From Bigelowiella natans CCMP2755 (taxonomy: Eukaryota > Protista > Cercozoa): a stretch of DNA of 64,000 bases. The notes below the pieces were generated by a model, which worked only from the letters and a program-made list of their open reading frames with translations, did no database searches and was not told the origin of the DNA. Both the position numbers and the translations under genes were made by a program. The DNA is taken from assembly GCA_000320545.1 (NCBI GenBank), contig ADNK01000827.1, forward strand, positions 1,347 through 65,346, read 5' to 3'. The stretch's first letter is position 1, and each line of letters starts with the position of its first letter. This document shows, piece by piece, positions 1 through 50,150 of this stretch.

Positions 1-99
1 ATGAATATATTACTACTTATCCACTGCTTACACTTCGCCTTATCGCTGCTGCTATGTTTTAGGAGAAGACTTTTATTTATTCTTGGTTTTGTCATGTTT

Positions 100-239
100 A
101 AGGTGTGTGTGTGGTTAGTAGACTAGGGTAGCAATACCCTCCTCCTCCTCCTCCTCCTCCTCCTCCTCCTCCTGATGGTGCTGTTGTTGAGGTGCTGCCA
201 GCTACAGTCGTCACTGCATCAGCCCGATAACAACAAAAC

Positions 240-277
<38 letters not shown>

Positions 278-1661
278 CATCAGATTATGTTTCGTCAAGC
301 ATCATATAAGGAGGAGTACGACAACGACGATGATAACAGCGAGAATGTGCTAATAGTGATGATAAAATAGGAACAGAGCTGTAACTGTCTTTAGTATAAA
401 TAAATAAATGAATATATATATATATATATATATATACCGCAAGATCCATCAAGGCTGACTCTCCGAATCAAGTTATTTCCCGTGTCGGCAACGTATAAAC
501 CTGTTCATAAGAAGGGGGGGAGGGGAGAGCCTTAGCTTGTTGATCGACTGGTGATATGCTGGTCAAAATGAGGCAAATCGAAAGAGCGCGTGGAGCAAAG
601 CGACGAAGGAGGGGTATTTGAAAGCAGGAAGAACGGTATGAGAGTGAAATGAGCGCACTGTTATCAGGCCCCATCGCGACGTCCATTGGAAGGAAGAAAC
701 TTGCCTATTAATATGTATGTCCTCTATAAACATATGTATATTTACTAATATAGATATATAAAGCTTATTCCGTCTTCTTATTAAATATTTCTCTCCTGCT
801 GCTACTCCTTTCTCTCTGGATAAAACACACTCTCAATCACCCCCCCCTCCCCCTTCCCTCTGTATATACACGTATCATAATACATTTTGTCCGTTGCCAT
901 CCATACTTCCAGGCTCTGACAGCAGTTGTGATAATAGTCAATAATCGAGGAGGAGGGAGAGCAGCCAAACAACTTGAGTACCAATACTCACATGACGGTG
1001 ACGACCACAACGACGAAGCCTACTACTGCTACTATTAAACTCAATCTCTTTTCCTTCTCTTACAAAAAACGATGATTCGGTCTCCTCTTAGTGCGTCACA
1101 TCGGCTATTCCTACTACCGCTACTACTATCGCCTATGCCCTCCTCCTCCTCCTCCTCCTCCCCCTCCTCCTTCGGTTGTTTCTACACAATCATGCCCACC
1201 TTTTGAAGTCCCTACCAAAGTGCTGACGTTGCCGTTGATGAAGAAGCTCCTGCGTATGTAGCATCACCACCGCCGTGTTGTGAAAACAATGGTGGCAGGT
1301 ACAGAGACGTACACTTGCGAGTACGTTAGGAGGCGGAGGTGGTGGAGGAGGAGGAGGAGAAGAAGAAGAGGAAGAAGAAGAAGGAACCACCATCTCCGTC
1401 GTTCAATTGGGTATTATAATTATTATTATTATTATTCATTATCACTTCGAAACATCATCATCATCATACCGTCGTTGATTGATGTTATCGTTGCGTTTGA
1501 AGGTTGTCTTGAAGTATCGGTCCCGCTCTGCAACCTTCTTCTTTATCTTCGAGTGTAACACGCTGTACTTCTCCAGCTGTTTCATTTGTTGGTTCCAATT
1601 CCCCAGATTATCATCAGATAATTCTCACAAGGGTGATGACGACGAATGATGGGTTGTCAAA

Positions 1662-1696
<35 letters not shown>

Positions 1697-2016
1697 GTAT
1701 GCATACACATATAGCGAGATGCTCACCTTATACAATATTTCCTTCATATGAGCCTTGCGAGTGACTTCGTCAGACTGAATAAGAAGAAGAAGAAAGAGGG
1801 AAAGATAGAGCATATTTTAGATCGAGTGAGATGTACGTCGGTCACTCTCAGGTAGCGACGACTGCTATTGCGCCTACTACTGCTTTATATGATACTATGA
1901 TAACTTTCGCAAGGAGATAATATATATGAAACAGCATCAGCAGCATCAGCAGCAGTAATCACACTACTCGTTTATGTGGTGTTGCAACTATTGTCCCCCC
2001 TCTTCCAAACATCATT

Positions 2017-2051
<35 letters not shown>

Positions 2052-2149
2052 TATCATCATTATCATCGTAAGGGAGTAGTACCAAATCATCTCCCGTAGC
2101 CCTCTCCATCAGCGACTTCTCAAAACCGGACATGTTGTACAGCCTGATG

Positions 2150-2181
<32 letters not shown>

Positions 2182-2660
2182 GATGATGGCAACAACGACG
2201 ATGTTGATTTAGAAGGAAAGAACGATTGAGAATCCAAGAAAATGATTAATGAAACACGTAGATACGTATGACGGACATCTACCAAGCCGTGTGTATTCTA
2301 TATATGTTTACATGTTCCTGGAGAACTCGGTGGCATTCCCGGCTTTTCGAGATAAACGCTCCTGCGATCATGATAATATTCGTCACAAAGAAAGAGTAGT
2401 GCAACGATTATCGGAGTATCTTCGTAGACCATAGACGAGAATTCACGTCTTCTTTTTTCCCCCTTTTCGACGTTGACTACTACTACAGCAACAATAAGAA
2501 CAACTACAACTGCTATTATTACTACTACCTCGATATTTCTGGGCGGTAATGGGTACGTCCAGTTACGATCGATCTTCTTGTAATTCTTCAGCTCTCTCTG
2601 AATAAATACATGTGCCGATAAGCCCCACATATCAATGTTGTGTATTCATCTTCATTAGCA
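100..2660 (-). CDS. Probable multi-exon gene of unknown function; exon structure unresolved, may run off the window
   Basis: Short coding-like blocks on the - strand (e.g. DDNLGNWNQQMKQLEKYSVLHSKIKKKVAERDRYFK near 1500-1615) alternate with microsatellite-rich, intron-like segments. No family recognised. Confidence 0.3.
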
Positions 2661-2969
2661 TATCAAACAATATCTCCTGCTGTTGATCTCTCTTTATTTC
2701 ACACTACTCATCAGGTTTACTCGATAGTGCGTATAGAGTATTTTTTAGATTTTGGACGTCTATAGAAACTGACACAGTGAAGAAATAGCGAATGCAATAT
2801 ACTGCGGGCGGATGTAGGTAACTCTGAAACAAGGACCTTTATGTCGCGGTCGATTCGAGGCTCTGGTGCATCTGAATTTTCATGGAGGATGATATTAGAG
2901 TTGTACCTTAATTCTCCCAGCTATCTGGGCGCCGCGATGAGGCAGCGGTTACCGAATCGTTTTGCAGTG

Positions 2970-2971
<2 letters not shown>

Positions 2972-3018
<47 letters not shown>
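2972..3018. repeat. (GT)n microsatellite
   Basis: Directly visible dinucleotide run. Confidence 0.95.
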
Positions 3019-3021
<3 letters not shown>

Positions 3022-3499
3022 ATGACCTGAAGAGGACGATTTTTGCTCGACTTCCATATTCACCAATCCTGTTTCTTTTTCTGTCGCAACCTATGGAATT
3101 GAAGAAGGCCTGCTGAAATAGTTACTCGCCAGAGGTAATTAATGGAAATTTAGCTTCAATGAACGTACCCCCCTCTGGACTCGCTTCCTAAGCTGGCGTC
3201 CTTTTCGCCCACGCATCTTCGGATGGATGTTCCGTGATTCCTCGGGCACATTCCAGAATCCAGCTCGAGATACCAAATGCGACGTGGTTTCTGCCTCCCA
3301 CAGGCCAACGCTTAGCAAGCTGATCAAGCATCACAATTATTAGTCGAGAATTCGGAAGCAGCTTGCCGAGCTCTGTACCTGAGGAGGACGATCCCTGCCC
3401 ACTGGAGCACTTGGACTTGACATAATGTAGACGGGCGATGATACATCGGTGTGCGAGGGGGGGGGAGGGGGGGGATCAGCAGAGATTCAACACAGTGAG

Positions 3500-5580
3500 G
3501 AAGTGTTGTTGCAGCATCGGCGGCTCTCTGGAGGAACTAACCGACAGAGGCCTCCTTCTCCTCCTCCTCCTCCTCCGATCTGATGTTGCCCCACTGCAAC
3601 TCTTCCGGTAGAAGATCGACGTGTCGTTGTCATGTCGAGCTGGTGCATCATGTTCCATTTTCACACTGCGACAAGGCTGACTTCGAAATTCAAGTGGCAT
3701 GTGGCAGCCAATGCTCAAACGTGATGAAAAATTCCACACCTCCCATGTGGTTCTGGCGCATGCAGTTTTGATCAACGCTTTCTTCATTGTTCATTGTTCA
3801 TTGCTCCCCCCTGTCCTCCTCCCAACCCTCACCTCTCCCTCTCTCTCTCTGCAGCTTGCCATTTTCAGAGGGTCTCCCGCACATGGCCAGTGAGCAGCGT
3901 GCAGGAGGATCGGTGTTGATGCCTCTGCTGTGATCCAAACGTTGTGGAGACCTGACTGGACAATGGAGGCTTTTGGTTTGTGGAGCACTCCCATTCCGCG
4001 TTTGGAGTTTTGAGGGCCGGAAGGTGTGGTGGGGAATGGAGTCCATTGGTGAGTTTTTGGTGCTGCTGTTTTGTTCACAGGGAATTGGGCATCGATCAAA
4101 AAAAGAGTGTCCAACTTTTCGTCCAAAGTGAGTTCACGAGAGAGAACCACTTTGCCATTGAGGCCTCCAATGTTCCACCGTGCAACTTTGAAAAAGGAGT
4201 TTGAGTGCATGCGTGGTTGGCGAGGGAGGGAAAGAGGGGCCCGCCTCCTGCGCCGGTTCTTCAACGTCACTCTTTGTTGTGAGACCCCCCGCCGTGTCGC
4301 TTCCCCACGCAGTGCGTGGTGTGGCAAGCAAACAAAAGAGCACGGTCCACAAGACAGACCTTGCAGTGATGTGCTCCATGTGCACATGTGTGCACGTGTG
4401 GATGTTGCCAACACCGTGTGTTGATTGTGCTTGGTCATGGGCGTCAAGCATTCTGCTCACCCCACCTCGCTGCCATGTTCCGATGTCCAGCATTTCCAGA
4501 CTTGCCTGTTTCGCGCAATTCGCGCGCCGAGATGCAAACATGCACACCGGTCGGGCCATCAACTGCAATGCGGCGGGTGCTGAGCTACTTGCATGAGCGA
4601 TCATTGGCCTGTGCGTCGTTTCCGAATCTGTTTGGATTTTGAACTCCGTGTCATTTCAATCAACAGGGCAGATTGCTTCTTTCACAGATTCATCCACGAA
4701 ATGGGATTTCATGGTCCGCATCCCAACAATGACAATGTCATCTTGATCACAACAAATTTCTCGGATGCATCTCAAACCTCTGGTCTTTTTTCTTTGCACA
4801 TTCAGCACAAATTGCTTTGAACGCATCGGAACCATGCATTTCAAGTTCACCTCCTCTTCCATGGACATCAAAAGATTCCGATGTTTCATTTTCCTTTTCC
4901 TTTTCACCAAAGATCATTTCGGCACAGTGTTTGGAAAATTTCTTGGAACCATTTCGAGTCGCACATTCATGTGCAGCCAATGCAGTCGAAGCACACGTGA
5001 CAACTGCCGAAGGCGATTTTTGACAATTTCAGGGCACACATCGTGCTGCATGGGAGAGTCATTTTGAGACGATTTGGCGACACATGATGCGCTGGCACGG
5101 ATGCCCATTGAATCTTCTCGCATCGAACTGTGCAAGTTGATGGGAGAGAGTTGAAGCACATGTGCACATCTTGCACGTGCTGCATGCAAATGGCAATGCA
5201 TCATTTGGGTGGTCATGCCCATCACACAGCGCTGGCCACGTGCAGTCTGCTGAGTGGAGCTTGTCAAACTTGCCACGCAGTCTGCTCAGCATGCGCTTGT
5301 GCATGATTTGCACGTTCACATTTCAACTGACATCGTGTGTTGGAATGTGCGCATCGTTTGATGTCTCATGCAAGGATCAGGTCACACTTGTGCACGTTGG
5401 CCGCAGCACAGCTTGCAAGCATGGTGTGACTGTGGTAGTCGCCACATCATGCGTTCTGCGTTGTGGCTGTTGCACCATGCTTCCTTGTGTGTTGCTCGTT
5501 GGTGTCAAAGTTTTGCCCAGCTAGCGTGTTGTTGCATGGTGTCAATGCATGATGTGCACATGCTGCATCAACGGCAATGA
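3500..5580. other. TpA-depleted, CA/TG-rich island (hypermutated repeat or relic DNA)
   Basis: Only 2 TpA counted by eye in 3611-5520. ORF-track translations inside this span are essentially Tyr-free and rich in His/Cys/Met. Confidence 0.85.
3791..4200 (-). mobile_element. Degenerate non-LTR retrotransposon (LINE) APE-type endonuclease fragment
   Basis: FKVARWNIGGLNGK (WN-x-x-GL motif), LDTLFLIDAQ (D-x-x-x-L-x-E-T-like), KRGMGVLHK (GV-like motif) and ILLHAAHWP (Y-x-P-like motif) occur in the order expected for an L1/RTE endonuclease N-terminus. No RT seen. Confidence 0.55.
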
Positions 5581-5755
5581 TTTGTGGCATTAGTAACTTT
5601 GATCCAAAATGATTTGATGACAGGTGCCAACACTGCAACAAACGTACATGGAAGTCCAAAAGTCAAACATTCAAACTAGCTACATCAAATTTCTTTTCAT
5701 TTGCATTAGGGGCTGGCTTTATTTTTTTCCGACCGATCTTTAATTCCTTAGATAG

Positions 5756-8449
5756 TCAATACTTTCTTTTTCTGCCTGCGTTTGCTTCTGAGGATGAGTC
5801 CTCAGGTTCCCATTCCATATCGTCACCTGAGGGAGTCCCTACTATCTTCTTTAAACTGACATTAAACTTAAGTGTTCCTTCCGGCGTTGAAGAAATGGAA
5901 ACAATACTGTGGTCACGCAGCTTTCCAGCAATTATCATTCGCGACATTTGTGTGATGATGTGCCGTTCCAGGTACCGCCTCAGCGGACGTGCTCCATAAA
6001 TAGGTGTATATGCTGCATCTAATACAATCTTGGCAGCTTTTGCATCTATTTCCAAATCGATGTCCTTGTCTTTGAGGCGATCACCAAGGCCCTTGACTTG
6101 GAGGGTTACAATCTTTCCAAGTTCATCGCGGCTTAGAGGTGTGAACACAACCATGTCGTCCAGGCGGTTGAGGAATTCTGGGGCGAAGTGTTTGCGAACT
6201 GCGTCTAGCACTTTTTCGCGGGCGTCAGGAGCAAGCTTGCCAGTTTTTGCATCGATTCCATTGAGAAGATGCTCCGCTCCGAGATTGGAGGTCATGATAA
6301 TTACAGTGTTGGTGAAATCCACTACACGTCCTTGGCCATCAGTCAATCGCCCGTCATCCAAGACTTGCAACAGTACATTGAAGACACGCGTGTGCGCCTT
6401 CTCTACCTCATCAAAGAGGACAACGGCATATGGCTTGCGGCGGACTGCTTCTGTAAGCTGCCCACCAGTCTCATGCCCAACATATCCAGGGGGCGCCCCA
6501 ATCAATCGAGCTACAGAGTGCTGTTCCATGTACTCTGACATGTCAATTCGAATTATTTCCTTCTCACTGTCGAAAAGCTCCTCTGCCAGAGTCTTTGCCA
6601 ATTCAGTTTTTCCAACGCCAGTGGGACCAAGAAATAAGAAGGAACCTGTGGGACGATTAGAGCTGGCTAACCCTGCGCGCGATCTCAATATTGCCTCAGA
6701 CACAGCATCAACAGCTTCGTCCTGTCCTACAACACGCTCGTGCAAACGATCGCCTAATTTGAGGAGTCTTTGAGCTTGACTTTGTTGCAGCTTAGTTACC
6801 GGGATACCAGTCCAACGTGCCACAATCTCTGAGATCTTATCAGAGGTGACGACCTCTGTTAGGAGACTGTCAGTCCTCTTTGCCTTCTGCTCCTTGTCTT
6901 GTTGCATGAGTCTCTTGATTCTTTTTTCTACGTCAGGAATAGCTTCATATTGCAAGTCTGCAGCGCGTTCCATGTCGCGGGCGCGCTGGGCCTTGACAAG
7001 CTTAGTTTTGAGTTGATCAAGCTTCTTACGGAAACGTTGAATTTCAACAACGATCGCCTTTTCATCCTCCAGACGCTGCATCAATGGTTGCAGCTCTTTC
7101 TCCAAGTCTCTCAACTTTGTTTTGACATTCTTCAATCGATCCTTACTTGCATCATCCTTCTCCCTTTCGAGAGCAGTCCTTTCGACTTCGAGCTGCAGTT
7201 TGCGTCTCTGCAGTTTATCGATGATCTCTGGCTGGGAGTCGAGCTGGACGCGTGTAGATGCACACGCTTCGTCCACAAGATCGATAGCTTTATCGGGCAG
7301 AAATCGTCCGCTGATATATCTATCCGATAACTTTGCTGCTGCAACAAGAGAGGCATCAAGCAGTCGTACACCATGATGAGCTTCATACTTCTCCCGTAGG
7401 CCACGAAGAATTGAAACCGTATCCACCACAGATGGCTCCTTTACAAGAACCTGTTGAAAGCGTCGCTCGAAGGCAGGATCTTTTTCCACATACTTTTGGT
7501 ACTCGTCTAGGGTTGTAGCGCCTATTGATCGGAGCTCTCCACGTGCCAGCATAGGTTTGAGGAGGTTTGCGGCGTCCATGGAGCCAGAGGTTTTACCAGC
7601 ACCAAGAACTAAATGTATCTCGTCCATGAAGAGTATCACTTTGCCCTCGGCTTCTTTAACTTCTTTAAGAACGGCCTTTAGCCTTTCCTCAAATTCTCCC
7701 CGGTAGGATGCACCAGCGATGAGAGCTCCCATATCAAGTGAAATAAGTTCTGCGTCGAGGTTCTTTGGGATGTCCCCACGCACGATTCGTTGTGCTAAGC
7801 CTTCCACTATTGCAGTCTTTCCTACACCGGGGTCTCCTATGAGAACAGGGTTATTCTTGCGACGACGAGATAATATTTGAATACATCGTCTTATTTCTTG
7901 ATCTCGTCCTATTACTGGGTCCAACTTACCGTCTCTTGCTAGCTCGGTCATGTTAATACCGTATTTGTTGAGTGCGTCGAAGGTGCTCTCGGCATTTTCA
8001 CTAGTTACCTTAGCGCCCTTACGCATTTTCTCTACAATTTTCTTCACTATCTGAGGGGTGAGACTTACTTTTGAAAGAACACTAGACACGTTCTTCTGCT
8101 CCGCGCATGCTACGAGGAGAGTATCGATCGCAATCAATTTGTCCCCATTTTTTTTCATGAGCGATTTCGCCAAATTCATCATTCTTTGGAAATTTGTCGA
8201 TAGTTGTGGCGAGGGCGGAGGGGGCGTTTGCCTAGGAAGTTTTTTCTGTGCGTTTCTGAGTGCAGTCTCCACATCTACAGGGTCAACACCCGGTACATCT
8301 TTGCAAAGGGACTCTGCAACTCCACCGGGAGTGGCAAATATTACTATAGCGAGATGCAAAGGATCCACTTGCGAGTTGGATCCAGCTTGACATTCGTCAA
8401 AGGCTTCTTTAAGCGCCTTCTGGGAGGCTTTTGTTAGATCGTAGTTCAT
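5756..8449 (-). CDS. clpB: Cytosolic Hsp101/Hsp104 (ClpB-type AAA+ disaggregase), intronless
   Basis: Clp N-domain; [13 protein letters not shown]; Walker A GDPGVGKT and GPTGVGKT; Walker B FMDEIH and FDEVEK; coiled-coil M-domain; GARPLRR. First ATG is at 8449 (the track start at 8479 is a non-ATG codon). Confidence 0.97.
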
Positions 8450-8588
8450 GTGTTGTTTTGAGTTGTGTGAGAGCACCAAAATGAACTAACACCTGTACCA
8501 GCAAATGTGTGATGTGATAAAATCCATGGAAATTTTTATCAAGTCGTACACAAGATTTCCCCTATGATCACGCTATTTTCCACCCCTT

Positions 8589-8647
8589 GAAGCTTCGGGA
8601 AATCTTTCACGAAGTTCTTCCAGAATTACTTCCGGAAAATTCCAGAA
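8589..8647. promoter_or_regulatory. Heat-shock element cluster in the Hsp101/meckelin divergent promoter
   Basis: GAAgcTTCggGAA (8589-8601), TTCcaGAA (8618-8625) and TTCcgGAAaaTTCcaGAA (8630-8647): inverted nGAAn arrays 140-200 bp upstream of the Hsp101 ATG. Confidence 0.85.
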
Positions 8648-47899: not shown

Positions 47900-50150
47900 T
47901 CCTTCTGGTTTCACTAGTTAGACCTCACTAAAGTTAGTTCGAGGCACTGCGTTTCGCACACTGAAAATGTCTTGCAACGTTTTGGAAATGCAGTTTGTCA
48001 TCATTGTTTCATTGTGTCCGAGTCCCCGTGAGTCTTCACGCACAACGTTGCTCTGTTTGCATCGGACATCCCTTCATCATGGAATCAGCCAGCACAACAA
48101 ATTTGATGTTTTTGCAATGGACATGCATGTCCTTCTTGTGGTTAGCGGAAGTGGTGGACGTGGCCAAAGTTGGGCCTGCAACGTTGAACTTCAGCACACG
48201 GACTCAATCGGCGGAAAGTGAACACGCAGCGATGTGAATGTGTGAATCAATGTTGAATGCGTTGTCATGTGCTTTGCCCATACACGGACGGCACGTCCAA
48301 ACGACAAATGAACCATGTGGAGTCACTCAGGGCAGCAATCGCCCCATCACGCACCACGCACCACTGCACGCTGGACTGGACCAGTGCATGGACCAATGAG
48401 TCGGCCCTTGACACACTCCCCTGTCTCGGATCACTGGAGACAGGCTCAAGCTACCTAGTGTTGCCACAACTAGGCGAAAAGCGCAAGTGAGCTGCGCTGG
48501 CTTTGCAAATGCAAGCGTGCACGCGTTTTTTTCGGGTGAGCGCTTGCAATGGCAATGGTCATTGTGAACACCTTGGAATGTGTTTTGACCAGTTGAAAAC
48601 GTGGCTGACATTGGTGTTTTCAGCAGCACGTAGTTCTGGCACGAGTAGTTGAAAGGCTAGATCGAAAACACCGGCGACGGCGCCGGTGATTTGAGATCTT
48701 CAGCCTGCACGTTTTGTTTTCAACGTTCAACAGTGTTCATTGAAAACAGGTTGTTTTCCGCATTGTTTTCCGCACAATTGCTTGGAGCACACGTGCGTGC
48801 GCGGTCGCGGCGAGCAGAGGGGCAATCACAGAGGACCAATGGACACGTTTTTTTGTCCACACTGGCACAGTGAACAATGCAAGCTGGCACGCCACACACT
48901 TGCATTGTCAGACACACGTGTCTCTGTGATGATGGACACGTGGTGCAAATTGCACTTGTGTGGGATGTGCACTGAGTGTTGTCGTGACCATGTATGGCAG
49001 AAAGAGTTTCCCAAACATTCATCGTCGACCCGGAAGAACAGGCTAGCAGGGCGCAGACCAGCAGGGCGCTGCAGTTGGTGGGAATCAGGTGCGCTCCTCA
49101 CTTGTTCTGGAAGGGAGTGAGAAGTCCCACAGCAACAAACACAGGCAAATGAAAAAGACCATGTGCACACAGTGTCTCTTTCTCGAAAACTTCAGTTTTG
49201 TTTTGCACTTTTGTGACACCGCATTGCAGCATGGCAACACGGAAAAAGTAAAAGTGAATGGTTGTGAGCCAAGATCAACCCCAGAACCGATCAGCCATCG
49301 GCAATGGCGGCTCGTGTTGGAGCGGCCCGGCTAGCCAACGCTCGTGTGTTTGTTTTTGCACTTGCGTGCAATGCAACGCACCTAGCAACGTTTGCGTAAT
49401 CCAACAATGACAGAATGTTGCAAGTCAAGCAAAAACTCTAGAACACTTGCAGCGGCGTGGCGGATGTTTGCATGGGTCACAGCAAGCGTTCTAAGCTATG
49501 AAGCGGCCTAGGCATTTCCCTGCTAGCCAAATGCAGTGATTCTGTCTCCATTGCCGGTTTTCATTGAAATCTGATCTGCTGATCATGGCTCAGAACTGAA
49601 CAATGAACCATGGAACAAGGGCACTTCTAGCAACAAGTGCTGGGAGTTCCAAAGAGTCCGCCTGCCCAGCAAACTCAAGCTTTTGTGATCTTAACAGGTC
49701 AGGCATTGAAAATGCTTCATTCATTCACTCATTCGTTCGTGTGCATGTCAGCAGCAATTTTGTGCTGATTCATTGAATTTTCAAAGGGGCAGGTTCATGC
49801 GTGCACAGATGCGATGTTGCGCACGTAAATCGTTGGCATGTGTTCTCTAGTTGTGTGATGTTCATGAATGGCGTCTGCAGATGGCCTGCTTCAACACCTA
49901 AATGCGCACGTTGAAACCAATCAAATGTGAATCAGCGCATTTCAATAACAAGCCGTTGCATGACAGTGACACAGTACAAGCGAGAACACTTTGCATGTGC
50001 TAAATGACACAATCACGCGCTGTGTGTGTTGCAGTGACTAGAATGAGTAGTGCGGTGCGAGCCTGCTAATCGCATTGAAGGCACCTCATATGGCCATGTG
50101 CGTCTAGATGTCATCCGCTGCTTGCAGAAAGGACATACTGCATTTGACTA
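47900..50150. other. Second TpA-depleted island (relic repeat DNA, family not recognised)
   Basis: About 20 TpA in 47941-49680, mostly in CTA/TAG context; overlapping His/Cys-rich spurious ORFs. Confidence 0.8.

Follow-up and report, generated by a model that had tools for sequence, protein, structure and literature searches.

A TpA-erased island of mobile-element debris beside the Hsp104 gene of Bigelowiella natans: a very probable end-state of TpA-specific A:T-to-G:C hypermutation

Results

A sharply bounded island almost devoid of TpA

We analysed a 64-kb stretch of the Bigelowiella natans CCMP2755 genome (assembly GCA_000320545.1, contig ADNK01000827.1, positions 1,347 to 65,346 of the forward strand, hereafter "the window"), in which a patch of 2.1 kb has lost nearly all of its TpA dinucleotides. 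This patch, which we call the island, combines the truncated tail of a long interspersed nuclear element (LINE) with an endonuclease relic, part of a different repeat and ~0.75 kb of unique spacer DNA, and it lies beside the 3' end of an Hsp104/ClpB gene (Table 1). That TpA can be specifically hypermutated to TpG or CpA in Bigelowiella natans is already known (10.64898/2026.01.13.699255). In 15 mutation-accumulation lines of this species, Mettrop et al. 2026 found that 231 of the 302 nuclear single-base mutations fell into two regions, a 186-kb giant-virus insert and a 25-kb virophage, and that 230 of these 231 mutations were A>G or T>C at TpA, arising at ~1000 times the background rate and in some lines only (10.64898/2026.01.13.699255). 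The same authors detected 124 genome-wide clusters of TpA-poor, CpA+TpG-rich 1-kb windows, reported that TpA-poor predicted genes are enriched for reverse-transcriptase, endonuclease-reverse-transcriptase and DDE domains, and proposed an ADAT2 homologue as candidate enzyme (10.64898/2026.01.13.699255).

Table 1. Features of the TpA-erased island and of its right flank (positions in the window)
Feature	Position	Strand	Remarks
TpA-erased island	3443..5590		Five remaining TpA, all CTAN/NTAG
Left-border zone: G-rich tract (3457-3474) and (CCT)n (~3551-3576)	3457..3576		Single-copy, already TpA-poor
3' end of a young non-LTR (long terminal repeat) retrotransposon family, 64 bp, severely 5'-truncated, (TTCATTG)n tail	3740..3803	+	Alignment of copies with their flanks
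Apurinic/apyrimidinic-endonuclease-like (LINE-type) relic, N-terminal half (plausible)	3866..4309	-	87% identical copy on contig C1606, also TpA-free
Dispersed-repeat fragment of a longer repeat	4308..4955	+	Copies on contigs C778, C2589 (two) and C521
Single-copy spacer	4956..5590		No second match in the 91.4-Mb assembly; TpA-free to 5522
Hsp104/ClpB gene and 3' untranslated region; intron-less open reading frame 5756-8479	5586..8479	-	Ordinary TpA

The window contains 3,538 TpA, a mean of one per 18 bp, and its two longest TpA-free gaps are neighbours within the island: TpA occurs at positions 3609, 4586, 5436 and 5522 with none in between, leaving gaps of 977 bp (3609-4586) and 850 bp (4586-5436), while the third-longest gap in the window measures 335 bp and gaps of other dinucleotides never exceed 355 bp. 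Between 3611 and 5520 (1,910 bp, GC content 0.51), an initial annotation made from the sequence alone had counted two TpA, a CTAC near 4585 and a GTAG near 5435, where it expected about 100 at ~50% GC. Both were found exactly as claimed, against 113 predicted from base composition, or 84 once this prediction is scaled by the TpA ratio of 0.74 that characterises the rest of the window (Poisson P ~1.6e-33). The same annotation had noted an abundance of TG, CA, TGCA and CATG together with intact CpG, which our counts reproduce: compared with expectation, TpG is found 1.56x, CpA 1.90x, TGCA 4.4x and CATG 3.8x in this tract, and its CpG ratio is essentially intact (0.71 vs 0.82 elsewhere in the window).

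Using an operational rule of at most two TpA per 300 bp, the island extends from 3443 to 5590, and the TpA that remain in it are CTAA at 3538, GTAG at 3609, CTAC at 4586, GTAG at 5436 and CTAG at 5522. Its borders are as sharp as initially described: TpA is normal as far as 3442 and then reduced to the single CTAA and GTAG over 3443-3610, and on the other side the border falls within 5523-5591, with a normal TpA density again from 5591. A second, less saturated TpA-poor island is found at 47930-49382 of the window (blocks 47930-48455 and 48632-49382), where ten TpA remain, mostly in CTAG, GTAG/CTAC and TTAG.

Because TAA and TAG are missing from all six frames of TA-free DNA, such DNA carries long spurious open reading frames (ORFs). 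In the island, stops are TGA alone (11-21 per frame) and 29 overlapping ORFs of 50-218 aa are found on both strands. Unannotated "genes" within TpA-poor islands thus deserve distrust, and such by-product ORFs could inflate gene predictions. A tRNA scan and an Rfam scan of the window gave no matches.

The unusual composition is reproduced by independent reads. Fourteen single-organism DNA runs from 2025 (eleven studies) contain 93-97% of the words sampled from positions 3000-6500, and the Illumina-derived contigs of three of these runs were compared with the assembly over 2700-8600. These contigs span 3028-8600, covering the island piecewise with breaks at the simple repeats of the left-border zone, and display zero differences, with the exception of one short contig at 4758-4896 that departs from the assembly at four positions, all four matching the C778/C2589 paralogue described below. 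The five TpA left at the locus, which all belong to the slow classes defined below, are unchanged across the three runs. Since the independent runs agree with the assembly, the pattern is not an artefact of assembly or base calling, a concern that the initial annotation had raised.

The island was produced by TpA to TpG or CpA changes made in place on both strands

The repeat fragment at 4308-4955 has paralogues that still contain TA, which gives access to the ancestral state of the purged sites. When the window was aligned with the copy on contig C778, 25 of the 26 aligned TA were changed (16 A>G and 9 T>C, with no transversion), whereas only 3-13% of the positions in other base classes differed. 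Considering all positions with TA in at least one of three TA-bearing paralogues (one on C778 and two on C2589) as ancestral sites, we obtained 28 such sites, at which the window displays TG in 17 cases, CA in 10 and TA in one, with no other outcome. Sites that became TG and sites that became CA are intermingled along the element, showing that both strands were mutated, and a test for strand-coordinated runs of TG or CA gave no signal among the 61 sites that could be resolved in paralogue alignments.

Copies that were themselves purged tell when this happened. The C521 copy, which was purged independently, resolved many of the same sites in the opposite way to the window (TG for CA and the reverse), and the endonuclease relic and its C1606 copy, although both TA-free, show CA in one and TG in the other at eight places within 444 bp. 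These discordances between copies imply that ancestral TA were mutated independently on either strand, after the copies had separated. Judged from these alignments, the direction of change, from TpA to TpG or CpA, in place and on both strands, can be taken as proven. The initial annotation had proposed precisely this direction, opposite to that of fungal repeat-induced point mutation (RIP), and had named two further observations that would speak against it, namely intact active copies that are equally TpA-free and substitutions between copies that lack a TA to TG/CA bias; the C778 and C2589 paralogues keep their TA, and the bias is the one just described, with 27 of the 28 ancestral sites turned into TG or CA.

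The borders of the purged tract are regional

The purged tract continues without a gap over four unrelated pieces in both orientations, and over single-copy DNA. Positions 3400-3739 (340 bp, also without a second match in the assembly) and 4956-5590 (635 bp) are purged as fully as the repeats, and for ~40% of the core tract (3611-5520) a second copy does not exist in the genome. The converse was observed in the paralogues. The C778 duplicate (L002, C778:165864-169535) and one of the two C2589 duplicates (C2589b; L003, C2589:65022-68693) are 97% identical over 2.3 kb. They diverge by ~1% over the first 1.8 kb, where TpA is ordinary and the DNA is essentially unmutated, as it also is in the other C2589 copy (C2589a), and then by ~10% over the last 0.5 kb, where nearly all differences are TA/TG/CA or CA/TG swaps. 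The mutated part of these duplicates starts ~600 bp past the stop of a 374-aa ORF, between convergent ORFs. A hypermutation border thus falls inside a duplicate, and targeting is regional and not set by the limits of an element or by its copy number.

Flanking bases influence which TpA survive

TpA survival was found to depend strongly on the flanking bases in a sample of 264 kb of DNA, made of the window and twenty 10-kb stretches from contigs that were picked for copies of the island's repeats. Ten islands of at least 500 bp were found, which make up 4.0% of this DNA (an indicative figure, owing to the choice of contigs), with ratios of 0.08 for TA, 1.72 for CA and 1.57 for TG. TpA survival, calculated for each tetranucleotide as its frequency in islands relative to background, was by far the highest for CTAG (0.72), followed by CTAA/TTAG (0.15), CTAC/GTAG (0.13) and GTAA/TTAC (0.12), and then by GTAC (0.04), TTAA (0.03), ATAC/GTAT (0.025), ATAG/CTAT (0.014) and ATAA/TTAT (0.009), with no ATAT surviving (0). 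CTAG reaches a density of 1.8 per kb in islands vs 2.5 per kb in background DNA, with none in the core of the 3443-5590 island, and we found no indication that CTAG sites are being added.

De novo mutations are consistent with this order. We tallied by hand the three-base contexts of the scaffold 10 mutations listed in Table S2 of the preprint (10.64898/2026.01.13.699255): A>G changes were at TAA in 32 cases, TAC in 22, TAG in 3 and TAT in 34, and T>C changes at ATA in 33, CTA in 17, GTA in 30 and TTA in 35, next to four T>C that were not at TpA and one C>T. The base 3' of the mutated adenine was thus T in 67 cases, A in 67, C in 52 and G in 20, whereas the availability of these bases in the background sample is ~35%, 22%, 22% and 20%, respectively. 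By this comparison, adenines followed by G were mutated two to three times less often, in agreement with an island survival order that goes from CTAG (0.72) down to ATAT. CTAG is the sole tetranucleotide with a G after both adenines, which explains its survival at least in part. Two irregularities appeared in the hand tally: mirror classes are unequal for TAG A>G (3) vs CTA T>C (17) while the other pairs are balanced (34/33, 32/35 and 22/30), and the four scaffold 10 T>C outside TpA are at ATG or ATT, though the preprint text puts all mutations on TpA.

Origin of the pieces that make up the island

The 64-bp piece at 3740-3803 belongs to a family whose summed word depth is ~300-400 times the single-copy level. 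Its copies measure 64, 68, 70, 78, 103, 348, 525, 619 and ~690 bp and share a common end before (TTCATTG)n, and this combination of a fixed 3' end with variable starts identifies the piece as a 5'-truncated insertion of a non-LTR retrotransposon. Copies of this family (for example L008, L009, L015 and L016 among the loci L008-L020) are 96-100% identical, number a few hundred by depth and sit mostly within TpA-free islands. Their last 690 bp contain 0-2 TpA per copy, with few CA/TG discordances and about four sites that are polymorphic for TA, CA and TG. Since TpA and discordances between copies are both few, the consensus of the family must itself be TA-poor, which could mean that the family has escaped the mutator or that its master copy resides within an island.

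The initial annotation had described a LINE endonuclease relic. In its favour, the C1606 paralogue has a longer ORF with the motifs WN-RGL, GDFN and SDH, which align across three copies; on the other hand, this paralogue scores 19.8 bits against Exo_endo_phos (E 7e-4), below the 24.5-bit cut-off, and E 0.01 against Exo_endo_phos_2, and a Pfam search with the ORF of the window and that of contig C1781 gave nothing useful. A PDB sequence search with the endonuclease-like ORF matched a RACK1-like WD40 tail only and no endonuclease, and an AlphaFold model built from a three-sequence alignment was unusable (predicted local distance difference test score 31.7). With these motifs and a profile match below cut-off, a LINE endonuclease origin of 3866-4309 is plausible. 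Two of its residues had been read as traces of TA to CA changes. For LHAAHWP, where Tyr is typical, this reading gained support, since the His of AAHWP is a Cys in the third copy, as would fit an ancestral Tyr codon mutated either way; for LDTLF it had to be dropped, since Leu for Ile is not a consequence of TA to CA. The C1606 ORF (L022, C1606:67166-70621, positions 1498-2391) continues directly into a RACK1-like WD40 segment, which PDB and Pfam matches place at residues 258-296, and this suggests that a WD40 gene fragment received the endonuclease relic on C1606 as an insertion or became fused with it.

The two flanks of the island differ in nature. The initial annotation had noted ordinary TpA in the flanking genes, which holds for the Hsp104 side: there, marine metatranscriptome contigs cover 5586-8450, with none on the island. 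The left flank (1-3440) also has ordinary-to-rich TpA (ratio up to 1.19) but is without convincing ORFs, being laden with microsatellites that include (TA)n, (GT)n, poly-Pro-like CCN runs and (ATC)n-type repeats.

Discussion

Our results indicate that the island is very probably what remains once a TpA-specific A:T-to-G:C hypermutation, acting in place on either strand, has run to saturation, and that it results from the same process as the one described in the Bigelowiella natans preprint. As in that process, TpA alone was changed, TpG and CpA alone were produced, and both strands were affected; the regional action, the transcriptionally silent DNA and the TpA-poor, CpA+TpG-rich footprint are also shared. 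A difference lies in the degree of completion: the 186-kb insert and the 25-kb virophage are still half full of TpA, whereas the island is 2.1 kb of fully saturated debris and unique spacer. It would probably also miss the cluster rule of the preprint (three consecutive 1-kb windows with a CpA+TpG cut-off of 1.52), because the fixed window 3001-4000 has ratios of only 1.26 for CpA and 1.34 for TpG. The main text of the preprint makes no mention of CTAG, tetranucleotides, trinucleotides, retrotransposons or borders inside duplicates (10.64898/2026.01.13.699255).

In mechanistic terms, such a process turns TA into TG or CA, site by site, on chromosomal DNA, here in silent DNA next to the 3' end of Hsp104, and leaves the slow-reacting sites (CTAG, CTAN/NTAG) behind when it reaches saturation. 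The most likely chemistry would be a deamination of adenine to hypoxanthine in DNA, which would then be read as G at replication, by a putative enzyme with a requirement for T on the 5' side of the adenine and a bias against G on its 3' side. ADAT2 and TadA act on substrates with a fixed U33-A34 context, in which A always comes after U (a point that is argued in the preprint too), and the 5' T requirement matches this context. To our knowledge, a natural genome-wide defence by DNA adenine deamination has not been established, and when the literature was searched for a TpA-directed A-to-G defence of the genome in other organisms, papers on RIP and APOBEC alone were returned. The island resembles the products of APOBEC3/AID and of ADAR/ADAT in being the outcome of a presumably enzymatic hypermutation that obeys a fixed rule for the 5' neighbour and is directed against foreign nucleic acid. 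Unlike the changes made by APOBEC enzymes, which are C to T, arise on single-stranded replication intermediates and are usually strand-coordinated, the outcomes are not strand-coordinated here; ADAR and ADAT act on RNA, while the changes at this locus are in DNA.

If the process were an analogue of fungal RIP, duplicated DNA would be sensed by homology and mutated along the length of the duplication. The resemblance is real, since in both cases dense, context-specific transitions wreck mobile DNA in place and leave sharply bounded, dinucleotide-skewed islands; three pieces of the island are dispersed repeats, and the preprint itself makes the comparison with RIP (10.64898/2026.01.13.699255). 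The chemistry runs the other way, however: RIP is a C to T process, mostly from CpA to TpA, which creates TpA and lowers GC content, whereas here TpA is destroyed and GC content is raised (0.51 in the island vs 0.44). RIP also responds to duplication and stays within the duplicated length, while at this locus the single-copy DNA of 3400-3739 and 4956-5590 was purged without a second copy, the near-identical C778, C2589b and C2589a duplicates were spared over 1.8 kb with a border within the duplicate, and the 186-kb target of the preprint is single-copy (10.64898/2026.01.13.699255). We therefore reject homology sensing as very improbable, and the repeat-targeted, RIP-like action proposed by the initial annotation is not supported by the sequences compared here. 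The target would instead be chosen by its silent-chromatin or non-transcribed state and not by sequence homology.

The base under attack deserves separate consideration. TpA is palindromic, and the attacked base can for this reason not be read from the sequence; some protists do modify T at TpA. A TET/JBP-type oxidation of thymine at TpA to hydroxymethyl- or formyl-uracil, which mispairs with G, would lead to T to C changes. We give this possibility only a slim chance, as the sole Tet_JBP match in the genome reaches 23.5 bits, below the 34.9-bit cut-off, and has two stops within it. Editing at the RNA level, in which an ADAR-like enzyme would have converted A to I in retroelement transcripts that were then fixed by reverse transcription before integration, could draw on the retroelement origin of two island pieces and on the preference of ADARs for a 5' U, as discussed in the preprint (10.64898/2026.01.13.699255). 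It is rejected, with hardly any probability left to it, because the tract passes without interruption through elements on opposite strands, the joints between them and the single-copy spacer, and because changes to TG and to CA are mixed in one and the same element; copies of the same insertion-independent ancestry moreover resolved sites differently, and the mutations of the preprint were seen to arise in place in single-copy DNA (10.64898/2026.01.13.699255). Just as negligible is an origin of the pattern in sequencing or assembly errors, or in selection against TA, be it by a TA-cutting enzyme or through avoidance of stop codons. The oddity of the pattern is all that speaks for it, while three Illumina-derived contig sets match base for base, the TA-bearing paralogues and the CA/TG discordances denote mutation and not inherited composition, and the tract is non-coding debris.

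Several observations weigh against TpA-specific hypermutation of silent DNA as we describe it. The deaminase inventory of the genome, in which the initial annotation had suggested looking for an expansion, comprises six CDA-fold loci (contigs C980, which carries an ADAT2-like locus, C570, C3623, C3286, C1679 and C3588) and one A_deamin (ADAT1-like) gene on C2414; no expansion was found. A neighbour bias in which adenine was mutated was absent from the 61 resolved sites, a small sample; without such a bias in strand choice, the flank effect may belong to the duplex site and not to the single strand. The end of the Hsp104 RNA coverage (5586) coincides with the right border of the island and in itself speaks for our reading, but contigs are not proof of a transcript end. 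Finally, positions 1-3440 adjoin the island and are apparently non-coding, yet they are unpurged, and a rule by which all silent DNA is hit is therefore too simple.

A more ambitious picture can be drawn, which we offer tentatively and with more doubt than confidence. The mutator would be aimed at a silent chromatin domain, and neither at repeats nor at "foreign" DNA as such; the edges of this domain could lie at transcript ends and inside duplicates, and the mutator would read the duplex NTAN, ATAT being the fastest site and CTAG nearly immune. TA-free islands would then occupy ~4% of the genome, far beyond the 124 clusters listed to date, and the young LINE family found in the islands would perhaps be TA-poor as the result of an arms race.

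A natural A:T-to-G:C mutator with strict dinucleotide specificity that acts on chosen chromosome regions is rare biology, and its discovery belongs to the 2026 preprint. Such a process goes against the GC-to-AT bias that is otherwise universal, and a natural DNA adenine editor may lie behind it. To this, the locus described here adds a saturated example in which the direction of change is proven by paralogues, as well as evidence that targeting is regional rather than homology-based. Together with the 264-kb sample, it also adds a flank rule that is borne out by the mutation list of the preprint and that provides a specificity test for candidate enzymes. What remains of interest is this flank rule, together with the regional borders and the real extent of the islands across the genome.

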